Below are positions 40,973-64,000 of a stretch of 64,000 bases of DNA, piece after piece (position 1 is the stretch's first letter; the number at the start of each line of letters is the position of its first letter). Both the position numbers and the translations under genes were made by a program. The notes beneath the pieces are model-generated. The model saw only the letters and a list, made by a program, of their open reading frames with translations, did no database searches and had not been told where the DNA came from. Source of the DNA: Chlorokybus atmophyticus (Eukaryota > Plantae > Mesostigma and Chlorokybus algae); the NCBI GenBank assembly GCA_009103225.1, contig RHPI01002048.1, positions 1,203,906 through 1,267,905 on the forward strand, written 5' to 3'.

Positions 40973-43902
40973 CAGTCAGACGCCGATATAAGCATCCCTT
41001 ATATTCTGAGCAGTTGTATGCTTCTAAACGTCTTATGCAACTACTGACATAAGCATATTATATGTTACTATCAGGCAAGCGGGACTATTACGAGCATAAT
41101 ATATGCTCTTATCGGCGCAGGCTTTTACAGGCAAAAGCTATGCTTTTCAATGTAAATATGTCATATGCGTGCACACATGAAATAATGCATGAATAAGCAA
41201 GCTATGTGCTACATTACAACAAGCAATGTGCTTATCAATTCTTAAATAGAGGCTGTTTCGATTACACGTCCTCCTCCTCGCTCATAATCGCATTATCATT
41301 AACAACGAAGAAGTTATCTAAAGTAGTTTGCTGTCGTGCGTCGCGTGCGCCAAACACCTGGATATGGATGAGCTTAGAACGCAGTTTACGCAATGCCAAC
41401 TGCTCGATTTCTGTAAAGTTCTCCGCGTGAGAGACGAGATAAGCTTCAAACTTGTTGAGCGCATCCATGCCCTCTTCAAGCGAAACAGGCGGAGGTGGTA
41501 CACTGTCAAAGTCCTCGTCATCTGCTTGCAAACGCAATCAACTTTGCCACAAGCACCAAGCATTACAATGTGCACGCAAGACAGGCCTGTTATTACCTTC
41601 TCCAGCAATCACATTATCATTAGTTTCCTCAGGCTGCAGCTCCACCCCCACACTAGCAAGAACTGCCTCATCAGAGTATTCTGGCTCTGTGGGGAAATGA
41701 GCATCAGCTGCCAAGTACTCCTCAACTGTTGGCAAGTCATCAGCTGGAAGTTCAAGCCTGCTCATCAAGTCCCAAAGGTCGTCAAGGTCCTGCATTTGTC
41801 ACTCCTTTCTGTTAGGTGGGGCATATGCGCGCATGAGCATTGTCATATGCATGCGTGTACCGTTGATGATGCAGCTATTGTTGAAGGCTCGCTATAAGCA
41901 CGCGTCTCAGATGCCCATGCTTGAGGAATGATACGTGTATGGCGCCAGCGATTGCGTATGGTTGAGGGAGTGACTTCGCCCCATGCCTCCTTGCTCCACA
42001 TGATTGCATCACGTGCATTGACCGGCACTTTCCTTAAGTCCATGGTGGGGTCAGCTTCGTGGTGCTGAAGCATGTGTGCTAGTAGCTTGCGCTTGTACCT
42101 AAGATGAGCTTTACACTGTTCAGTGTGAGCGTATGACAGCACCATGCATGTCGTCTTACCTCATCTTGTACGCGGCAATGATGCCGGCATCAAGCGGTTG
42201 CACCTCTGAAGTTGTGTTTGCTGGCAAGAACAAGCAAGTCAGGTGCGACAACTTCAAGGTCTTGAAACCTTTGTTGTTGCCTGTCACGGCGTTCGCGCAC
42301 TGATTTGTTGACGAGTTGTCCAACAGCAACAGCACCTTGCGCTTGGCCTGCTCCATCTCATGGTTGAAGCCAATCAACCAAGTCGTGAACACCTGCAAAC
42401 AGCACAAGCGTGAGTACATAATGCACCACCACCATGGTGATGCACACCTACACTCAACAACTTTCCGCTTGCGCTAGCTGCAAAGCACAAGCGCTTATAA
42501 CACGAGTGCAGCACGCGCGCACGCACGCACACACAACACAAGTGCTGCACACGCACAATACAAGTGCAGCACGCACATGGATGCGCACAATGTAAGTGCA
42601 GCAGCACGTGTGCATGCACACACAATAAGTGTTGCACACACAGCCATGCACATACAATACAAGTCATGTGCAGCTCGCGCACAAGCACAGTTGCTGTGCA
42701 GCATGCATATTACGTTTGCTACACACCTTGTTGTTCATCCACGCGGTCTTGTTGTGCGTGTATAGAACGCCTATCTGGCTGGGACGCCATGCTCCAAAGC
42801 ATTGTGGCTTCTTAGAGTTCCCAATCACAATCATAGGGCGCTTGTCGCTGCCTGAAGCGTTGCAGCACAGCATGATCGTGAAGCGAGTGCGAGCTTTCTT
42901 GTAACCTTTGACCTTGTTGCCTATCTTTGCCAACGTTCTCGATGGGCGCAGCCGAATGTATAGTATTGTCTCATCCATAATATAAACGTCCTCTGAGTCG
43001 AACTCAGCCAGAACTGCCATGAATTTGCTTGGTTACATGATGCATGCATGGCGCATTAGCAAAGGTATGTGTGCACGTGACTGAACTTACCTTAAGGCAG
43101 ATCCGTCAACGCATGCATGACTCCCGCTTGATCGGCATCTCCGCTTTCACCATGAGCGGTAAAGGGTTTGATGCCAAAACGACCCTTCCATCCCCGCAAC
43201 CAACAGCTGGATACTGCAAATGTGTCTGGCAGCTTCATAAGGCTTGCGAAATTGCGCGCCTTCTCCGTCACGAGCAAGTCCGAGATGCATGCGTTGTTGG
43301 CCATTGCACGCTCAAACCACACATTCAAGGCATTGTCAAGCTGTGGATGGTGGCCTAAACGCATGCGTTTGCTGCTAGTTGCCATGGGTCCCGCAGTGTT
43401 GGCACGCTCAATGATTGAATCACCATCCTTTAGCAAGCGAGAAAGCACAGACTGGCATAGCTCAACATTAAGCTCTTTCCTAACCAATGCAAGCTGATCA
43501 GCCTGTTTCTTCACATGTTGATTGTTCCTGCACCATTCTACAATGTGTTTTTTATCTCCCAAACTCAATGCCGTACGTTTAGACGCCATGCCACCTGCTG
43601 TGCATTCTATGATCAGTGCCAGCATGCAAACTTGATGGTACAAACACGTGCACTCCACAACATACACACACAATAGCCTTGGTGTTATTAACGAAAGAGA
43701 CACACATGTATGCACATCAATGCACGCAATTGCAAGCACACATTGCAAGCACACTGACTGTGAGTGCAGCGCAGGCCATTGCGCTCACAGTCAGTTTGTA
43801 CAACATACAACATATACATTGCACATACACACAAATGCACACAGTAAGGTGCAATGTCAGCGTCTTTGTTAGTTACCTTTGCTGCCTATAACGCCTCTCG
43901 TC

Positions 43903-51561: not shown

Positions 51562-53029
51562 TGTTGAGATTTGGACACTAATGATCATGCATGGAGTTGG
51601 TGCAAGCACAAGCACACACACTCTACCAGAGCATACACACAAGGCTGATCCAAAAAAGGCGTTCCAAGGATTACACCAAAGTCACACCACGGGCTTTTAT
51701 ACCCGCCAGTTCTGCACCTGTCTACTCTAGAAGTCACCACGACTTTAACACTCAACAGATTCCTGCGCTCTAAGTTGCACCACGTAGCTACTCTCAAGAG
51801 CTTTTCAACAAGCTATAACACGCGCCATACAATGATGTAACCACAAAGCTACAACGTTTCTTCTATAGCGCCTGGAAGTCTCCAGTCTCCAGACTCGAAT
51901 CCGCGCCTGGAACGTTCTCGACTGAAGTCCTCGCCTGGACCTTTCTCGACCGGCACCTTTTCGCGCCTGAATCTTCTCGCGGCTATTCTTATCCACAGGG
52001 CAAGCTGACCGGATACAAGAATATCCTCAACACTCCCATGCGGGCAGCTTGGCCTTTAACACCTCTAAATGCCAACTCCTTGCGTACTCATGCGCGACGA
52101 ACTCCCACGCTATCCTTTGCTCTTTCAACCATCTTGAAGACACTTCCCGCACCTCTCATAAGTGCCTCCTTGAAGCTTTTCACTTGCACACCCTTGTTGC
52201 AACTCTCATGGTCGTTTGCATGTGTCCCCACGTGCTCACTCTTGGCAACGTCCTGCACAACACCACCACTATACTGCTCCTTCTTGTCCTTGCTGATGCC
52301 AATGCTTGCTTCAGCTCCCACGGGCACCGGGACTGCATCTTCAGTCTTCTTGACACCTTCAGCAACCTCCACACGTGGAATCACTCCACCACTCGCATGT
52401 GACGCGCTCACCATCACTTGAGCTCCCGCTCCCTTTTCAGTAACAGGCACAATATGCGCCTTCTTCTTCATCTTCTTCACATCTGGTGCTAACTTGGACA
52501 CCTCCACCTTGGTCTTCTTGTGCATCTCCGCACCCTTGACCTCCTCGATGATGTAGAGCCCTCCAACATTGATGCCAACCAATTCTGCGATACCACGCAG
52601 CACTACCCTTCCTATGTCCCCACTAAACACTGTCACAGCACCAACTCTCGCCGCGATGCGCATAGAGAATAGGCTAGCCTCTAGTCCTAGGACATGTAGC
52701 ACCTCTCTCAACAACACTTGCCTCGTCTTTCCTCCAACCTGGGATAGGATCTTCGCTTCTCCTACACTAACTACGAGCACCTCCGTCTTGCCAATCTTCA
52801 CCTTGATTGGCTTCTCTAAGACCTTGTACTTTGCCTTCTCACGATCACTCGTCATATGCCTCGTGCAACTCGAGTCCAGCACCCAACTAGCTGCCTCACC
52901 ATCCGTTGTTGCATGAAAGGCGATAGGCGTCTCTTGAACACGTCCCGTCATGGCATGATGCTTCTCTCCACCACGCTCCTCTTCGTGCTGCTTCCTCATT
53001 GAGCACTGCACCCTGATGTGGCCCTTCTT
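51562..53029 (-). mobile_element. Internally deleted Copia D: 3' LTR 51562-52032 plus gag-end/protease/pre-integrase ORF fused to the pol terminus; truncated by the CACTA terminus
   Basis: WVLDSSCTRHMTSD protease motif and GGLY pre-integrase motif in ORF 52088-53032; no integrase or RT; PPT before the LTR. Confidence 0.8.
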
Positions 53030-53074
53030 CACCGGTCATTTTGAGACCCCCGCATGGAGATTCATGGCAAACGC

Positions 53075-53645
53075 ACTGAATATTCGTATGATTTACCTTT
53101 CAGCTTTTTATCGAGTGAATAATCAAGTGTTTTCGTACATTCTGTGCGAGTGAATCATCAAGACATTTCGTACATTCTGTGGTGCCAAAACGAAATTGCG
53201 ACATTCACATATAAATCGCGTAAATATCTACACAATAAATCAATGCCACCTGTACAAACCCATATACCTTGTATATTCAGTTGAAATCGATTGAATGTTC
53301 AAGGGCATGCAATTGTGAATGGACACAGCATGTGCTCTGCTAAATATTCAGCTATACATTGCCTGAACATTCATGAAGGGGCATAAGCTTGTGGCTATAA
53401 CAGACAGCTTAAACTCACCAAGTCCCAACTGCTCGTGAATAATCAATTGATCAGCTTGTCACACATGTATATTCATAACCTTCATCAGTTTCATGCCACA
53501 GATGTGAGTGAACATTCAACACCAATCTAAAACTACGCAATACGATTCACACTAAGTTCTAGCTTTGAGTGAATTTCCAACACCATTCTAAAACCAAGCA
53601 ATACGATTTGCACTAACTCCTAGCTGTGAGTGAATATTCAACCCC
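53075..53645. repeat. Subterminal repeated motif ~GTGAATWWTCAA, as typical of CACTA ends
   Basis: Copies near 53113, 53147, 53432, 53505, 53568, 53626, plus degenerate ones. Confidence 0.6.
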
Positions 53646-53851
53646 ACACGAATAAACATATACTCTCATTTTGGCTAAGTCCCGAATGTGATTGAAAACC
53701 AAGTAGATTGCACTGCTAATTCTAATATACAGTCCAATATATGTTAAAGCCAGAGTTGCTCAGCAATTCTACACAGCTGGTTTGAGTGGATGGTGGGGGA
53801 CAGCTCTGATATGGACTACAGCATTGCTATGCGACACACCACCTGCTACTA

Positions 53852-54975
53852 CTAGCTCAACTCATGTCTTTGCTGTGCTAACATACTGTCCATGAGTGTT
53901 CGCAATCGTCTTCTCAACCTGTCTGCCACTTGAGGATGAAACCAACTCCTTTGCATCTGCACACAACCACACAGCAATAACATGTGGTTACTAAGCACGT
54001 GTCGGCCTACACGACAGTGCCACTGAAGCACCTTCCACTTGTAAACATTGCAGTGCACATGCATGAACTGTACATGTTGAAATATCCATATGTTTGGGTC
54101 AATTTGACCAGCTTGTACCCCATCTACAAACTTGTCAAGATAAAGCATGACAAACAACCCGCACGCAACTCCATCCTTCTGCTGAGGGACCTGCACAAAC
54201 ATGTGTCAATGCTTGCAAACCAAATGCATGTGCATGCATCCAATCAGTGCTTGTGACAGAATGCATGCAAACTCATCACTAGTGCAATGCAACGTGTGCT
54301 ACCTGTGGTACAAGAAGCTGTACGTTTTCGGGAGAGAAGTGTCGTTGTGAGTCACTTCCATGCTTTCTGCCCCATATGTAGTTAAGGTAAGCGCGCATAG
54401 GTCCATCAACGTTGCGATGCAGGCCAAGGGAGTCGAGATGGACGAGTAAAGGCGGCGTGTCACTTCCAAGTTGGCCTCCAGGATTGCACACAAGCAGCAG
54501 ACTCCAGTGAGTCCTGTGTACACAATCAAATAATTCCAGTTTGCAAATACAGCAGCAATTCAGCAAGATATTCTTGGCGCTTATTCTCACCGCTTGTCTG
54601 GGTGACAATTACTCCCCGCAAGTCTTTGGCAAATGATCACTCTCCCACCTGTCTATCCTATGATTGATCGTGTGCCAGTCATTTTGTCTATGGCAGCGCA
54701 CGATCCTGGTGTAGATATGCGGGTGGAACAGCTTCACCTGAATGCCATCTGCTCTGCCTAAGATTTCCTCTTCCTTGTATCTGCATGTGCATCCCACGTA
54801 CATATGAGATACACTAATAACACAAACGCAACAAATCGTATACCTGCAAAAGAAGTGGAGGATGGTGTCATTGAGCTCTTGTCTGCCATCTAGTAACCTC
54901 CTGTCCGTTTCAAGCACTGGCACCGCATCACGTGCACTTGCACTAGGGTAAATGAACAGTGGTTGCGGTGTTGAC
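53852..54975 (-). pseudogene. Ulp1/C48 SUMO-protease domain (ULP2/SENP6-like), spliced
   Basis: LFIYP..LNDTILHFF; HWSLLLVCNPG (His); LVHLDSL (Asp); VPQQKDGVACGLFV (Gln, Cys); WF.P..RRRLR terminus. Confidence 0.88.
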
Positions 54976-55319
54976 GGCTGCGGGTTGCTGACTGGATCGT
55001 CCAGCACCATGATATCATCATCACTGCCCGAGGTCCACAACTGCCGCAGCCGTCGTGGGTTGCTAATTACAACCCTCTTCGTCTTCATTGTCAACTTCCA
55101 TCTTGACTGCCTCTGCAGCCATAAATGGTTCAATTGGGTAAGAACCACAACACAAATCAACAAGCTCAAGCACACAGCAGCTTACCAGTGTTAGCCTCAT
55201 CCCCACTCTCTTCAACGTGTTGAACCCCACTCTGCACATGTTGTGAAACCCTACCGCAACTGCCCAGTCGAGAACGACGAGCAAGGCTCTCCCTTGGGAG
55301 CTGCGCTGGAGCACCACCT

Positions 55320-55720
55320 TCTTCGTACGCAGCGCATCGCGAGCACGTAACCTCAACCATGCTACCCACAGCGTGCCGTCGACAGAGGCTGTTTGGACAC
55401 GTCGCGCAGACTTGAAAAGCTGCTTCGTTGCAGTTCTTCACATGGCACCTGTGTTTTGGTTCAGTACAAGTGATGATGGTTCTAGGAGTGAAGTTCCTCA
55501 CAACAAGATGCCAAGCATTTGCTGCAATGAAGTCCACTTACTCATGCCTTGGGCACTCCCGATATTCATCCTCCGCAGGTGGCATAGAGACACAGTGCGC
55601 GTGGTAGCTTTTTCAGCAACCTTCCACATCGCAGCCAGATATGGTGCCCCCATCCTTGCAGACAAAGCAGTAGTCTTCATGTTCCCGATGTTCCAACGCA
55701 TCCAGCTCCAGTCTCGGTCT
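55320..55720 (-). pseudogene. NSD-type PHD-C5HCH tandem zinc-finger module (intron 55449-55541)
   Basis: Manual splice: EDYCFVCKDGGTISGCDVEGC*KSYHAHCVSMPPAEDEYRECPRH E|CHVKNCNEAAFQVCATCPNSLCRRH; one TGA at 55613-55615. Confidence 0.8.
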
Positions 55721-55834
55721 CATCCTGTGAACAAAGGTTCAGTGGCCAGGTCTACAGTCTCACAGTAGGGATATGAGGCATCACAATCGCAAACAGTACC
55801 TCTTGTACTTAAAATGCCAGTCGCGGCGTGTGGT

Positions 55835-58800
55835 CTATGACACCTTGCTCGAGGCGCTATTGGTTTCGCTTCGGGCACCCTGCACCAAGTACACAAGATG
55901 GTTGTATGTGATGCTAAAACCCAGGATATATGAGGACATCCAGATTCTAATGGACAACGTTGTCAACTCTCCTCTTACCGAAGTTTCCCGGTGCATGCCT
56001 CGACGCATGAGACTGCGCCTGTCTTTAACAAGCGCTACTACTGTTACTTTGTTGTCATGGGGATCAATTCCCTCAAACCACTGGCCCTTGACCTGCCAGC
56101 AAGAAGGGATATTCATCAGCCATTTTCATACTACTATTTCAATTTACTATCATCACACCAAGCACACGCCAAAACGATTGCAACACAGCCACTTACCAGG
56201 TTGCAATCAAGGTAGGTTTGTTGTGCAAAGCAGGGCTTGTCTTTTCTTAGGATTGCAAATCCTCCACTGTGCTAGACTTGGTTGCTCATGTACCACCTAG
56301 CTCTGAGCAGCTGGTGCTCCCAACCAGCTATCACCACAACATCAAAAGATTGCACCCTGCCATACCAATGGGTCTTCTTGGTTGGGTCATCTGAGTCACG
56401 CCCAACGGTAAACACGCCACAGTCCATGGTGTGGAGTTTCTTCTCCATTTCCTCTACTCTGAACTGACCGATGTCCTTGTAGCGTGCTCTGAAATATCGC
56501 TTGATGTACTTTGGAAAGATTGGACCGCTCAACAGCTCTATCTCGTGCTTTGTAAGCTCCCTAGCAGGTCCACGCCAGTGATGCAGCTTAGTCATATGCT
56601 CCATGTCCTTTGCCACGACATGTCCTTGTTTTGAGCCCTTTCCCTTGCCATCCTGCGTTTGTTCACCTCCCGACTGAACTCTCTGTGTAGCAGCAACCCA
56701 TAAATAAGTCATATTGTGTGCGCGTTGGACATCACGTAAAAAACAGCAACTCCCAAAGCAACTTACTCTTTTAACAGCCTGTATTCATCATCATTTTCAG
56801 CCAACCACCACTCGAGCTCCTGCCTTGTCTTACTATCTTTATCCCCAACCTCAATACGGTGTCTCCGTCCGCAGAGCACATAGTCGTCATCATCTCGTTG
56901 CTTGCCCGATCGCAAACTGATGTCGGAGAAATGTCACTTTAAGGTGTCCATGTAAGTGTTCAGCATGAGCTGGATAGAGTATCTGCAGATGCAACTGGCA
57001 CTTGAACAAGGCAAACAATGTGGAAAGTTTGCACGTAACTCTCAGTGGGCTCACACAAAACTTGCCTTTTGCAGATGCTTGCTTCCACATGCTGCCTTGC
57101 AAATATCATGCGCTTCACCCACTGCATAAAGCGTTCATGTGCCCACTCCCAGTGGTCACGCGTCGGACCAAGCCACATGCACTGCTCTGGTAGATGGCCA
57201 AGGAGGTGCAGCATCATTGTGAGAGAAGTCCGCGAGCCTCATGCACGTGCACCTGCACTAAGTAATAAGCTATGCATGCCATAGGAGCTGGGCATGCAGA
57301 GTAAAGTGTTATTAAAGCCAACCTTCAATTCTTCGAGGTGTGACTGCTTTACTTCCAATGCAGTCAGCCGTTGATAGATGTCGCATAGTTTGAAGATGGT
57401 TCTCTTCTGATCTTCTCCAATGTCGTGTGCAGAGCGCAGCACGTACTGAAAAACGACCGACCATAAGTTGTGCTTGTCGTGCAATTTCATCGAGCCTGCA
57501 TGCTCCATGTAAAAAGTTCCATGCATGGAGAATCATTGCTTTAGCGTAAACACAAAACGTATAACGGCTATCTCACCTAAATGCTTTGTGAAAGACTGCA
57601 GTTTCGAGCCGAAAGTGCTTGAAACCCTCACGCCGGAGAGCAATTGCTCAACCAGTCCTACATCTGTGATTGTCCATGGAGCCTGGGGTTTCACCTTGAC
57701 TGCGATTTCCTTTCCATCCTTCATCTTCATCGCTGTCTGCAGCACATAGGTTCAAGTCCTTAGTTAAATCCAACTATGGCACATGTCAACAAGGCCGACT
57801 ACATACGTACCTCTAGCCAAAGTTTAGGCATGCGGCCTTGCTGCTACAGATCTTCTCGTAACTCGATGCTGTCGCACAAGCCAGCTAGGAGATTTGCAAA
57901 GTTGGTTGCCGGGTTGGCAAAAATGTGCATAGGGCCAACCACATGACCTTTGACAGATTTTTGTAGCGGTAGCCAATATGGAAGGTCGCGATAACAGCTC
58001 AGTCCAAGGATGCCGGAGGACTTTGAAGGATGTTTCTTGGAGTGCAGTGGACGCTTGCTGTTGCGAGATGTCATAGCATACCTGATCACATGGCACCCAT
58101 TGCTGACATACCTATGTTCTGCAACCGAATGCGCAATCAACTGAGATTGCTCACCTGTACACGCTCTCTGCAGTCCGCATGGGTGGTGGAGGTCTGTATT
58201 CTGGTTGCGTCCAACGCTCATCAACTCTGTAAGGATGGTCATCCGGTAGGTACCGGCAGTGGCCTTGATAGATCACCTTTTTGAAAAGTTCCACATGTTC
58301 TCCACTGCACTCGCACTTTGAACAGCCAAAGATGGCTCCATGCGCCATCTGCAAGGCAGCTTTTGATGGAGCTGCGCAACCAACATGATGTAGTTCAGTA
58401 GCCACAACCATGGTTGCAAGGACAGTCTGATATACAGATACAGTCAGACACTGATAACAGTAAGTGCAAGCACTGCTGCTGCTTGCGTATCTGGGTAATC
58501 ATGGATTACAATCTCCAGAATAGATCTGCAACGAAAAACTGCGTCGCGGTGGCTGTCATATATGTCTATACCTACAACAAATGCCAGCAGATTACATGCC
58601 TCAGTCATGCGCATTTATCAAGCATGACTTCAGTTATGGAAGCTGCTTATCCTAGCTGCGTTGAAACCATACCTTCCAAGAGATCTCCCAACTGGTCAAT
58701 CATTGGCTTGAGATAAAGCCTGTAGATTCTCTGGCTGTTTGGGTCCAGGGATTACAGCAGCTAGAAATGTAGTGTCTGTCTTGTGCATCTTGGCAATGGG

Positions 58801-60900
58801 CAGGTTCAACACTGAGATTGTGACAACCCAAAACTCATAGTTCCCTGCAAGTCAACAAACCCTTTGCTGCCATTCGTACAGTTACACTGCAACGAGCATA
58901 CAGGAAAAAAAAAGCTCTTTTATACCTTTGTGCGGATCTTTGAACGGGCTCATCCCGTCGATGAACATCGCTAGGCGCACATTGCGTGGTTCTTTGGCAA
59001 ACCGGCTGTAGCGTTGTTCAGTGTCCTTGAACATTGGCGAATCTGACAGCAGCAAGTACACCAAGGGCTTACGACCAACTGCCCCAGCCCCACAGCACAT
59101 TTAAACATGCATATAATCGCAAGGCTGGATACTGAGGTCTTACAAACCGCCCCAGCACCTCGCCGACACACAAACAAACACAGGCAAGGACACCGAGGTC
59201 TTACATGCCGCCTCAGCGCCACGCCAACACACAAACAAACATAGGCAAGGACACCGAGGTCTTACATGCCGCCTCAGCGCCACGCACACAAAAGCACAAG
59301 GCACGGACACTGAGGGCTTACATTGGACTGCCCCAGCCGCTCACCAACACAATTATGCACACAGTCGTGCCTCATTTACCACTGAACTTGGCAATGTTAC
59401 CGTGTATAGATCGCATAATCCCATCCTGACTTCGATTTGTGTACGCCATCATCTCCGCAGCAACACTAGGTTCTAGGTACAGAGCCCTCAGCGCAGCAGG
59501 CACGTAAAAGTAACGCCCAATCTTCCATGCAACTTGTTTACCTCCTATGTTGCGGTAGCGAGGGGCCTTGCAGACTGCATAAGCAAGTCGTATGCTGATG
59601 GTACATGCTAATTAAATCCCATTGTAGTGAACATTTGCAACAATTGCTCACCTTTGCAAAGTATCCTGTTGGCATGTCGGCCACAATACAATATGTGATC
59701 ACAGCGACAGGCATCGTATGTGTGGAAGCCCATGTTGAGGCCTTCAAGGCATTTCAATAGCTCATGCGTGCTGCCTGGCATCTTATTCACCTTAGGCAAG
59801 AGGATGCCACGCAACAACCGGCACACAGTTCTGAACAGGCTGATGTTTCAGCAGTCAGCAGTATTATTTGCCCACCAACCTGAGCAATTTATTCATGAAA
59901 TTGAAGGGTATTCGATGTAGCTGCGGCAGAACCAATAGCAGCATGGAAATGCCTAGAGGGGTTGTACGAGAGCCGAAAACAACAGGGTTGCTTGCATTAT
60001 CCAGCAACGCAGCATTCACCTTGTCAAGTAGCATGGCATCATCAACGCATTTAGCCTCGTCCGGCTGCGATTCCACATCGGTTTCATAGTCTTGGTCTTC
60101 ACCGGCAACATCACCTTGCTCCGCATCACCTTGCCCCGAATTGACTTGCTCAGCAGTGGAGGTGCAGTGCACTGGTGTCTCAGGCTCTACTTGTCCATCT
60201 GTGGATTTGGTTCTGGCACCTTAATGCTCCTGCAATGTAGCATTCTCAATTCCACAAAATGCTGGGTGAGATTCGCGTTGTTCTCCATAAGCACATTGTC
60301 TTTCATGAGCACACGGATTACAACCTGCCAGCTGCAATGAGTCTAGTGGCACATGAACAATGAGAGGCACATGAACAATGAGAGGCACAGCATCAGCAAT
60401 GTCAACATGCCACGCAAGTCAGGTCGTACCTGCTGGTTGCAAGTTTGCTGCAACATTGAAAGGAGATTCAACACTCGGTTGCGACGGCGTGCCTGTGTCA
60501 ACATGTTCAGTAGCGTCGTTCCCAACTAGCTTGATTGTTCGGTGTCATGGAGAGCTTCACCTGGGGCAGGCCAGATTAATGATCAGACAGCCTGTTGTAT
60601 AGATTCACAGCTGTAGAGAAGTTGCTCTTGTACCTGACGACATGTGTAAGGATGCAGCAGCAACAGCAGCATCAACTTCTTCAAGTTCATGGGGTTGTAG
60701 TCGATCACGGTATTCAGGAGCAACAGCTTCTGGAGTGCCACACCACATGTTTTTGCCAAAGTTTTCATAATATTTAGCCCTTTAATTGTGGTTGTGTGTG
60801 AACACTTTGCTCCCTTTGCAGTCACGGCAAAAACACCTGCGAAAGTAGCTCAGCTGCTACTAACATCAAAAGCAGTCAGCCAACATACTGCAAGCAACTT
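55835..60900 (-). pseudogene. Multi-exon CACTA (Tnp2/En-Spm) transposase: transposase-associated Cys motif, Transposase_21, DUF4218- and DUF4216-like regions
   Basis: CFCRDCK (~60830); HTYDACRCDHILY; IHDSPMFK..FAKEPRNVRLAMFIDGMSPF; VLNLP..IPGPKQP; CSKC..YQGHCRYLPDDHPYR; WEWAHERFMQWVK..VEASI; WYGRVQSF..LLRARWY. Confidence 0.88.
59115..59335. repeat. ~58-bp minisatellite (~4 copies) within transposase intron 59043-59400
   Basis: Repeated cacaaacaaacacaggcaaggacaccgaggtcttacatgccgcctcagcgccacgc. Confidence 0.85.
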
Positions 60901-60997
60901 CCAATCAACTTCCATACAGCCAAAGCAAAGACCTGCAGGCACGCTGCCGCCGCTGACACCGCCGCCGTCGCCGCCGTCGTGACTGCCTACCGTAAAC

Positions 60998-61005
60998 TAG
61001 GGTTT
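60998..61005 (-). promoter_or_regulatory. Telo-box-like motif (AAACCCTA) in the short divergent intergenic region
   Basis: TAGGGTTT on the plus strand between the two divergent genes; an 8-mer can arise by chance. Confidence 0.3.
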
Positions 61006-61144
61006 AGGAGACATCCAATCCCGATTCAAAACAAGCTGGAAAGTCAATCCGGATATGCTCCACAGTTTGCGTACGTGCTCCTTTGCTTCTTCCGTCCAGT
61101 GCATTAGCTTCTAGGGTTGGTGTGCCAGGTAGCGTGGCGCCAGC

Positions 61145-62768
61145 ATGCGCGGCATCAAAGTGTGTAGCTTCTGCAAAGCATACTTGGTTAGGAATGGCAA
61201 CAACAGACGTCTGCAATAGCATGAAGAGAAGTGCAAGCTGTACAGTGAGCAGTATGGCTTCTATGAAGCCTGCTGGCACCACAAGGCAAGGGGGGACAAT
61301 GTGAGGCAATGCAGACTGCTGGCACAATGCATGAGGTCAGATTTCTTTGGGAGGAGTGCACTTGCCAGCAGTGCTCGCTTTCCAAGTTTGAGTGCGACGG
61401 CGAGCCCATGAATCACCTGCCTTGAGCACGGCCTGGAGCGTATCACGATGGGCAGATGTGCAATGTGGTTCGACGTCAGCTCGTGCGCAACGGTCGCGGC
61501 AAGTCCACTGTAATCGAAGACGATGTCAACAATAGGGTGAGTTGAACTGTCCTTGCAAACAGCAAAACAGCGCTTGCATGCATGACCAACTTACTCTTGA
61601 TTGCCAAAGGGGAACGCGGTTGTCAACGATGTCGCGACATTGGCTGCTTGGCGGAAGGAGATTGTTAATGAGGGGCAGTCTTTGGTAGCATGCCGCGGTG
61701 TGGTGTACTGGCCAGGAATGAGCTTATGGTATGCAGGCCACATCATCACTTTTTATGCCAACACAGGTATACTGCAAAGTATTAACATGCGCACGCTCAT
61801 GCAAGCACCGGCTCAGGCAAACATGTGGCTCAGGAAAACATACCATCAAGTACGACGATTTCGTTGAGGACCCATAGCTGCACCACATCTTGATAAAGAA
61901 CTAAAACATGGCAGCTGTGCGCGAGGGTTACGACGTAATGGTACGTGTTGGTGGTCAAAGCTGTCTGAAACTGCAAGACTTGCCTGGTCGAGAGCTCGAT
62001 CGGTGGCCCAAGCCCCCACCCCTTCTGATCACACGCACACCAATAGACTCAAACGGAAGACGTTGCAGGCCGCGCGCACTGGATCTCTTTTGCGGCGCTG
62101 GTGGTGTAGCCATGGGTCTGTACATGGCAGGGTTTGATGTTGAGGGCATCGACAACAAGCCACAACCATCATACCCATTCAAGTTCTGCCAGATGGATGC
62201 AATGGACGCTGACCCGACAGCATACGCTACGATGTGGGCAAGTCCTCCATGTCAAGCTCTAAGTGGGGCCATTCCCACTACACAGCGCTCCGCGTACGGC
62301 AATCGATGGGAGCACGTCAACCTGATTGACCCCATAAGAGCCAAGTTGTAGTTGAGCGGCAAGGCATGGGTGATAGAGAATGTCGCAGGCGCATCAGGAC
62401 ACATGACAACTCACCTGAAGCTGTGTGGCACCATGTTCAAGTTGGATGTGTATCGTCATCGCATCTTTGAGACAAACCCTCCACTGCACTCAGACTTGAA
62501 ATGCAACCACACTGGTTGTGCACTTGGAGAGCTGGCCACCCACCCGGAGCAGCGCCGGCAGTTGCTACCTGGGGAGAGGCAAATTTACCCGGTGTACGGC
62601 CAAGCATCTTGCCGTGGCACCATTGCAGGGTGGCGGTCTGCCATGCAGGTGGAGTGGATGGATGCGGAATCGGAAGTCAAGAATGCCATTCCACCAACTT
62701 ACTCTGATGTAGGCAGGCTGTTGCTGGAAGCAATAGGCTTCACTGTTGATCACCCTCCTTTTTACTGA
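61145..62768 (+). pseudogene. Spliced Zn-finger / Tudor / cytosine-5 DNA methyltransferase gene (introns 61537-61609 and 61767-61833), disrupted
   Basis: CSFC..HEEKC finger; Tudor VVYWPGMSLWYAGHIITFYANTG|KHTIKYDD in frame with the MTase; motifs I DLFCGAGG (62082), IV SPPCQ (62241), VI ENV (62376), VIII YRHRIFE, X NAIPP; stops at 61217, 61423, 61875, 61902, 62349 and a probable frameshift in the G-run ~61290. Confidence 0.85.
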
Positions 62769-63235
62769 AAGGTAGAGGTAGCTCTTGATTGCTGGCCACT
62801 TTGTTAGCCTGAACTTAAACCCAACAACAGAATGAGCGACCCGATAAAGTCAGCAAGAGGTCTTAATCACGAGGATGCCTCTGTTTGCCAGCACGGGAAA
62901 GACTGACCTGCTGGGCAGGGTCTCTTTCAGAGCACCTTCATGCCCAATTGCGCCGTCCGCCCACCCGAGACTAGACCTCCTGCGGGTTCACTGCGAACGC
63001 AGGGTATGGTCCAATTAAAGCTGACTCGCGAATGTCATGAACCAGAGGCTCTGAGCGTGTGCACAAAGTCTACAGTACGTCGCTGACTTGCGCGAGACGG
63101 CTCTGCAGGACCACATCCTGCGTTCGCAGTAAACCCGCACGAGGTTTTGTGTCGGGTGGGTGGGCGGAGAAGGAGAATTTCTAGGTTGCTGTGCGCATGC
63201 GTTTAGTTGCGTGCAATCTTTGGACACATGCCGGT

Positions 63236-63925
63236 TTCAGCGGTTGCCGGGGCCAGTACGAGGGCGGCATGTCAACAGCAGCAAGAGGTGTTCTCTCGGG
63301 TGGGTGGGGGGAGAAGGACTGCCAGCCTGAGTTGCCATATCACAAACAGCAACCCAACCCCAGCGGCAGGTACAACCGCCGTCCATTCAAAAGCCCTGGA
63401 GCAGATCGCGACCAACAAGTTCCCAGCAGAGGCTGGAGGTGGTTGAGAAGGTGAAATGCAATCACAGTTAGTATATGCACAAGAGCGATGCATACCTTTT
63501 GACTTACTGCGGACTTCTGTTACCACCTCCACTCTACAAGTGTTGTCACACTTACCTGTGCGCCGTGACTGCATACAAGCGGTTCAGCGGTTGCCGGGGC
63601 CAGTACGAGGGCGGCATGTCAACAGCAGCAAGAGGTGTTCTCTCGGGTGGGTGGGGGGAGAAGGACTGCCAGCCTGAGTTGCCATATCACAAACAGCAAC
63701 CCAACCCCAGCGGCAGGTACAACCGCCGTCCATTCAAAAGCCCTGGAGCAGATCGCGACCAACAAGTTCCATGCAGAGGCTGGAGGTGGTTGAGAAGGTG
63801 AAATGCAATCACAGTTAGTATATGCACAAGAGCGATGCATACCTTTTGACTTACTGCGGACTTCTGTTACCACCTCCACTCTACAAGTGCTGTCACACTT
63901 ACCTGTGCGCCGTGACTGCATACAA
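63236..63925. repeat. Near-identical 347-bp tandem duplication (2 copies)
   Basis: Units start at 63236 and 63583; only a few substitutions. Confidence 0.95.
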
Positions 63926-64000
63926 ACAGCAGCCAGCAAGGCTCCCAAGGCAGTGCGTTCGCAGTGAACCCGCGTGCAGTCGGGATGATCCTAAGCATAC

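Follow-up and report, generated by a model that had tools for sequence, protein, structure and literature searches.

The DNA analyzed here is a stretch of 64,000 nt from the alga Chlorokybus atmophyticus (GCA_009103225.1, contig RHPI01002048.1, positions 1,203,906-1,267,905, forward strand), the whole of which we refer to as the window. The window is a transposon nest, with Gypsy, Copia, LINE-like and pogo-like open reading frames (ORFs) and two N gaps, and it holds on its minus strand, spread over about 60220-53852, the pieces of one gene. We show that these pieces can be joined into a model of 22 exons (N2, N3, X0, A-D, F-J and E1-E10), from 60220 to 53852, in which the 21 introns measure 49-358 nt and are all bounded by GT..AG (21/21). 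The model is a single frame of about 1,430 codons, running from 60220 to the stop codon TAG at 53854-53852, once six frame-breaking length differences to X1 are bridged; X1 is the sole public run in which related sequence was found, and its contigs are about 97.5% identical to the window. N/X placeholders served to bridge the length lesions, and the surplus T at 58715 was skipped solely in order to follow the frame. We interpret the locus as a pseudogenised CACTA/EnSpm Tnp2-type transposase gene, from a family whose intact members probably make one spliced product, in which the transposase is followed by a PHD finger, a C5HCH finger, motifs resembling SUMO-interacting motifs (SIMs) and a Ulp1 protease.

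The frame of the model is also the one preferred by codon usage. When each piece was scored with a table trained on the other exons, the model frame was the best in 19 of 21 pieces, and the linker exon E2 (56092-55979), joined to its neighbours by GT..AG introns and phase, was clearly coding in this frame. At the 5' end of the gene, a TAA at 60223-60221 bounds the open frame, and the model covers the gene from exon N2 onwards. A preliminary description of this DNA had put the 5' limit near 60900, which is not established, the model frame being open from 60220 only. The four splice junctions proposed in the same description (DCNL/VKGQ, RETS/GARSE, KYKR/MRPR and EANT/EAVK), however, all fall at GT..AG sites and are in phase, and Pfam bears out the order of domains that it gave, transposase, PHD, C5HCH and Ulp1 being collinear and all on the minus strand.

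The transposase region

The spliced model was searched one exon at a time. Transposase_21 (Tnp2) was recovered as four Pfam pieces within 59100-58154, which cover positions 8-44, 47-86, 103-136 and 144-207 of the 213 in the profile and follow each other in genomic order; the best of them reached 29.3 bits, for a cut-off of 28.6. This catalytic region is carried by exons A (59042-58926), B (58844-58673), C (58571-58474) and D (58348-58155). DUF4218 lies downstream of Transposase_21, at 57238-56963 (30.1 bits for a cut-off of 27), with exon I (57252-57002) as its main carrier. With Transposase_21 and DUF4218, the transposase is of the CACTA/EnSpm Tnp2 type. Upstream of the catalytic region, the N-terminal transposase exons N2 (60220-59880), N3 (59830-59652) and X0 (59574-59401) matched no Pfam family; they are tied to the gene by the continuity of the frame across GT..AG introns, and the region they cover includes a 'C-x2-C..PRY' motif, typical of Tnp2-type proteins. 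Exon F (58081-57811) is also without a Pfam match, and exons G (57736-57577), H (57495-57323) and J (56900-56767) extend the frame of the model up to E1 (56682-56197), the last transposase-type exon. The intron between X0 and A, at 358 nt unusually long, contains a 61-nt minisatellite (59127-59323; 3.3 copies, 86% matches).

The region around E1 had been labelled 'DUF4216-like' in the preliminary description. Neither E1 nor E2 gave a Pfam match to DUF4216, even at a maximum E-value of 10, and we have rejected the assignment for E1, which fits in position alone. As a separate observation, E1 (56275-56628, minus strand) is nearest, by protein-language-model features, to clusters of hypothetical proteins from Basidiomycota and Mucoromycota, one of them with DUF6830, and not to plant DUF4216. 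Perhaps the C-terminal region of the transposase is closer to fungal CACTA-like families, a possibility that we mention as a lead only.

The PHD-C5HCH and Ulp1 tail

Downstream of the linker exons, E4 (55724-55542) encodes a PHD-like finger, detected by the Pfam profile zf-HC5HC2H at 55738-55616 (E 0.007), and E5 (55448-55186) encodes an NSD-type C5HCH finger followed by an acidic linker. C5HCH (PF17982) was found in 55537-55169, and the exact exon (55447-55187) scores 26.6 bits against a gathering threshold of 26.3 (E 6.9e-6), that is, barely above it. When the C5HCH piece was compared with solved structures, the best matches were the PHD5-C5HCH modules of NSD3 (4gnd, E 7.8e-4), NSD1 and NSD2. 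Moreover, the splice between E4 and E5 rebuilds the sequence 'CPRH-E-C', the counterpart in the alignment of 'CPWHQC', where PHD passes into C5HCH in NSD3 (4gnd). Since the splice recreates this NSD3-like bridge, the E4/E5 intron has an independent sign of being real, and the NSD-type match proposed earlier for the PHD-C5HCH module is upheld by both the Pfam score and the bridge. The zinc-finger pair has the NSD-type pattern of ligands, with a Cys as the last ligand where NSD has a His.

The tail continues in E6 (55112-54844), which has two SIM-like motifs (VVDL, and IMVL between runs of Asp) and, at 'LNDTILHFF', the start of the C48 region, and then through the four Ulp1/C48 exons E7 (54780-54591), E8 (54513-54303), E9 (54190-54074) and E10 (53956-53852), the last of which ends in the stop codon of the model. 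Peptidase_C48 was found as two collinear Pfam pieces, at 54608-54282 (profile 95-138) and 54205-53855 (profile 161-190), with scores of 14.8-17.8 bits that are each below the cut-off of 20.7 bits; the nearest clusters to the protease exons in a protein atlas were Peptidase_C48. The His, the Asp, the Gln of the oxyanion hole and the Cys of a C48 protease are all readable, in 'HWSLL' and 'HLDSL' of E8 and in 'QQKDGVACG' of E9, which we take to be the canonical motifs of the Ulp1 family.

Decay of the window copy

The X1 contigs retain the introns of the model, and the four 'joints' that they show lack GT..AG ends and are not introns; X1 thus behaves as DNA, not as RNA. X1 contains 0.49 of the words sampled, about what a divergence of 2.5% predicts, and is therefore a relative of the window copy and not the window copy itself.

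Against the model, the window copy has five premature stop codons: TAG 57846-57844 in exon F, in the transposase core; TAG 56274-56272 in E1; TAG 55837-55835 in the linker exon E3 (55879-55800); TGA 55615-55613, which interrupts the PHD finger in E4 between its zinc ligands; and TAG 55065-55063 in E6, ahead of the protease. Compared with X1, it further carries six length lesions that break the frame. In exon B there is one extra T in a run of T at 58715-58717, and both X1 contigs lack one T. In exon I, a 25-nt deletion at 57233-57236 corresponds to 2 + 23 additional letters in X1, which restore the frame. The remaining ones are deletions of 1 nt at 56628 (E1), 2 nt at 55028 (E6), and 1 nt at both 54633 and 54602 (E7). 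The three deletions in E6 and E7, together with TAG 55065, break the protease ORF. X1 restores the frame of the model at each frame-breaking exonic indel; the only other exonic difference in length is of 3 nt (56035, in E2), and the remaining indels that are not multiples of three are intronic. With at least 11 disabling lesions, the window copy is dead and unable to make the transposase-PHD-Ulp1 protein.

The preliminary description had listed three TAG codons, among isolated TAG/TGA codons, and one frameshift. The stops at 56272, 55835 and 55063 were placed correctly, but the total is five: the TGA inside the PHD finger had not been placed, and the TAG in exon F lies outside the part that had then been spliced. 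Likewise, the single frameshift becomes six frame-breaking lesions. Of the three TAG codons for which a comparison with CAG in other copies had been proposed, the one at 55063 is CAG in X1. The stops at 57846, 56274 and 55615 are lesions, because the modelled frame continues beyond each of them and because the latter two lie within conserved modules.

The spectrum of changes resembles what C-to-T decay would leave in a silenced copy, and it fits deamination of methylated cytosines. This reading rests on three features of the comparison: 72 transitions have A/T in the window and G/C in X1, against 24 in the opposite direction (over 53700-59699), 12 of the 21 A/T-ward changes that were placed fall on a CpG or CHG site in X1, and all five premature stops (TAG or TGA) can be derived from CAG, CGA or TGG by a single transition. 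Differences between the window and X1 are at least as frequent in exons as in introns, and those listed for the exons of the tail comprise 7 synonymous and 18 non-synonymous changes (an eighth could not be classed, its codon being a placeholder). The pattern of divergence is neutral and fits decay, and as such is uninformative on any constraint on the tail. The window copy is a fossil, whose main use is for comparison, in dating and in the study of mutation spectra.

These data bear on a scenario in which the PHD-Ulp1 region is a fragment of a host gene, picked up by transduplication, that has no role in transposition and was never part of the transposase. Capture of Ulp1 by Mutator-like elements (MULEs) and CACTA elements is frequent in plants, often without a known function (PMC13317346, PMC2528002), and the neutral evolution of the window copy would agree with a passenger. 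Even so, we hold this scenario to be very improbable: the tail shares the strand, the style of introns and the codon usage of the transposase, its catalytic residues and most of its zinc ligands are still legible despite the decay, and X1 is in frame at every site of an indel in the tail.

One fused protein or two products

We consider it likely, judging from the repaired frame, that intact copies have a single ORF in which transposase, PHD, C5HCH and Ulp1 are fused. A fusion in one frame had been put forward in the preliminary description. The frame is indeed continuous through all of the introns, but the window copy itself is interrupted, with TAG 55837-55835, on which the choice between one product and two turns, lying between the two parts. 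The passages from E1 to E2 and from E3 to E4 both keep the phase across well-formed GT..AG introns, and E3, 80 nt long and likewise placed by GT..AG and phase, contributes precisely the two bases needed for the PHD frame in E4. With other stops in this copy being lesions, an extra stop at 55837 is unsurprising.

Several points weigh against the fusion, and part of them would be explained if the family made two products, a transposase whose end is either TAG 55837-55835 or within a retained intron that follows E1, and a PHD-C5HCH-Ulp1 protein starting at ATG 55723 or 56116, by way of alternative splicing or an internal promoter. TAG 55837-55835 could be the natural stop of the transposase. Moreover, an ATG is found right after the acceptor of E4 (55723-55721), with an A at -3, and is a possible separate start, and another, at 56116, precedes E2 closely and in frame; both are suitably positioned for a second product. 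For E3, codon usage gives another frame a score at least as good as that of the model frame. In En/Spm, TnpA and TnpD both come from one transcription unit. In plant CACTA elements, Peptidase_C48 has usually been placed in a second ORF, ORF2, as in Chenopodium (PMC8978399). We nevertheless regard two products as rather unlikely. The phase is kept at both E1-E2 and E3-E4, each with a chance of about 1/3 if the two parts were unrelated; the interval between the TAG and the ATG, about 110 nt, is too short for a terminator and a promoter; and the four other stops, which are likewise derived by transition, are certain lesions.

Other points against the fusion concern the model as a whole. The indels in X1 guided the drawing of exons E1, E6 and E7, so that the agreement between the frame and X1 is partly circular. 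In a search of public runs, no RNA run was found to contain the stretch, the sole match being the unspliced contigs. Searches of protein, metagenome and viral collections retrieved no homologue with this architecture. An exhaustive profile search with PHD-C5HCH gave four matches, of which the best, to a tandem-repeat protein, is spurious and the rest are weak and in very long proteins; a word-indexed protein search with a 170-aa piece of E1 gave no match; scans of metagenomes with E1 and E5, and of viral contigs, gave no relatives; and the exact products of two ORFs of the window are not on record. In addition, the functions that we ascribe to the tail, docking on H3 and local deSUMOylation, would be carried over by analogy. 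A single fused product is the reading that we retain in what follows.

Ends of the element and neighbouring sequences

A 3' subterminal non-coding region (53074-53700) follows the gene, with tandem units of 35 nt and 61 nt at 53112-53646; all four copies of GAGTGAAT in the window are within these units. The element may terminate at the CACTG at 53074. Inverted-repeat and pattern searches of the window yielded no pair of terminal repeats, CACTG 53074 having no inverted partner, and self-comparison yielded no second copy of the element within the window. The other end of the element is probably beyond 64000. Rfam gave no match in 52900-64000. Close to the edge of the window, we noted a 347-bp tandem duplication with 99% identity (63236-63925) and a 20-nt motif, TGCGTTCGCAGTGAACCCGC, in both orientations (62982-63001 and 63954-63973); the repeats in 62950-64000 may represent subterminal structure of the element close to its other end, which runs off the window.

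Head-to-head with the transposase gene, on the plus strand, the motifs 'DLFCGAGG' and 'PPCQ' of C5 DNA methyltransferases are found in 61908-62768. The corresponding ORFs score 20.7 bits with Pfam DNA_methylase, just below the cut-off of 22, and since the methyltransferase is divided between two ORFs it is probably also broken. On the other side, a Copia-type Pol beta-barrel/protease ORF (52088-53032, minus strand; Pol_BBD, E 3e-12), with the upstream gag missing, borders directly on the CACTA element's 3' end (about 53040-53074); it is either the target into which the CACTA element inserted or truncated at its 5' end. Farther away, a 220-aa ORF at 43092-43754 (minus strand) has the DNA-binding domain of Tc5/pogo transposases (HTH_Tnp_Tc5, E 6.6e-10), and a further family of DNA transposons is therefore present in the window.

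Possible function and comparison with known systems

The product of the intact family would be at least about 1,430 codons long, with a DDE-type core, the PHD and C5HCH fingers, two SIM-like motifs and the Ulp1/C48 protease. Possibly, the protein is anchored to the tail of histone H3 by its two zinc fingers, as the likeness to NSD3 suggests, and the protease, guided by the SIM-like motifs, strips SUMO from proteins of chromatin, silencing or repair located at the element, on the analogy of Ulp1/Ulp2. Removal of SUMO could then aid excision and integration, or counter silencing. That intact members do couple a DDE transposase, an NSD-type reader of H3 and a SIM-guided SUMO protease in one protein, with which the element would choose or remodel its own chromatin, seems doubtful to us at present. 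If they do, SUMO could for example be stripped from silencing factors at the element's own locus. Were the tail part of the active transposase, its NSD-type C5HCH finger would offer one specific candidate for the reader, and there would be a stronger case, across unrelated superfamilies of DNA transposons, for the removal of SUMO from chromatin as an aid to transposition or to escape from silencing.

The removal of SUMO has been raised before for Ginger1 (PMC2836005) and for the VANDAL/KIU MULEs, the role of the KIU Ulp1 being unknown (PMC13317346). A similar benefit to transposition, or against silencing, has been discussed for plant CACTA-ULP elements. In Arabidopsis, the VANDAL/Kaonashi (KIU) MULEs resemble the Chlorokybus element in having a transposon-borne Ulp1, linked to escape from epigenetic silencing; however, their Ulp1 is joined to the anti-silencing factor VANC and not to a transposase, and PHD-C5HCH is absent. 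Ulp1 is also found in Ginger1 and Mutator transposases, some of which have a PHD finger as well, such as Ginger1-9_HM of Hydra (PMC2836005). A C-terminal Ulp1 together with a PHD finger, in a gene with introns, is common to these and to the Chlorokybus gene, but their transposase is Gypsy-integrase-like or MuDR, not CACTA, and no C5HCH has been described there.

Closer in the transposase are the CACTA-ULP elements of plants, including Cactavine-2, -3, -4, -5 and -13 of grapevine; rice has proteins with both Tnp2 and ULP1 (PMC2528002). Chenopodium, Vitis and Citrus have predicted proteins with such domains; in Vitis, single ones combine Transposase_21, DUF4218, DUF4216, Transposase_24 and Peptidase_C48, and the Citrus ones listed are without DUF4216 (PMC8978399). 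The Chlorokybus element belongs with these in having a transposase of the Transposase_21/DUF4218 superfamily and C48 downstream on the same strand within the element. In contrast, it is without Transposase_24 or a DUF4216 that Pfam can detect, its host is an alga, and it has the PHD-C5HCH module and the SIM-like motifs between transposase and protease.

A search of the literature on C5HCH together with transposon returned no paper describing an NSD-type PHD-C5HCH in a transposon. With the PHD5-C5HCH of NSD1, NSD2 and NSD3 (4gnd, 2naa, 9gbf), the Chlorokybus tail shares the same tandem finger with a CPxH-x-C bridge; it differs in being without SET or other NSD context, in having Cys and not His as the last ligand, and in that its PHD finger is cut by a stop, and binding to H3 would be a property lent to it by analogy. 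Ulp1, and Ulp1 with PHD, on transposases have already been published (PMC2836005, PMC2528002, PMC8978399), and the C5HCH finger is the one distinctive feature of the family described here. If the tail is part of an active transposase, an early-diverging streptophyte alga would join the hosts in which a SUMO protease, at times with a PHD finger, was independently attached to the transposition machinery.

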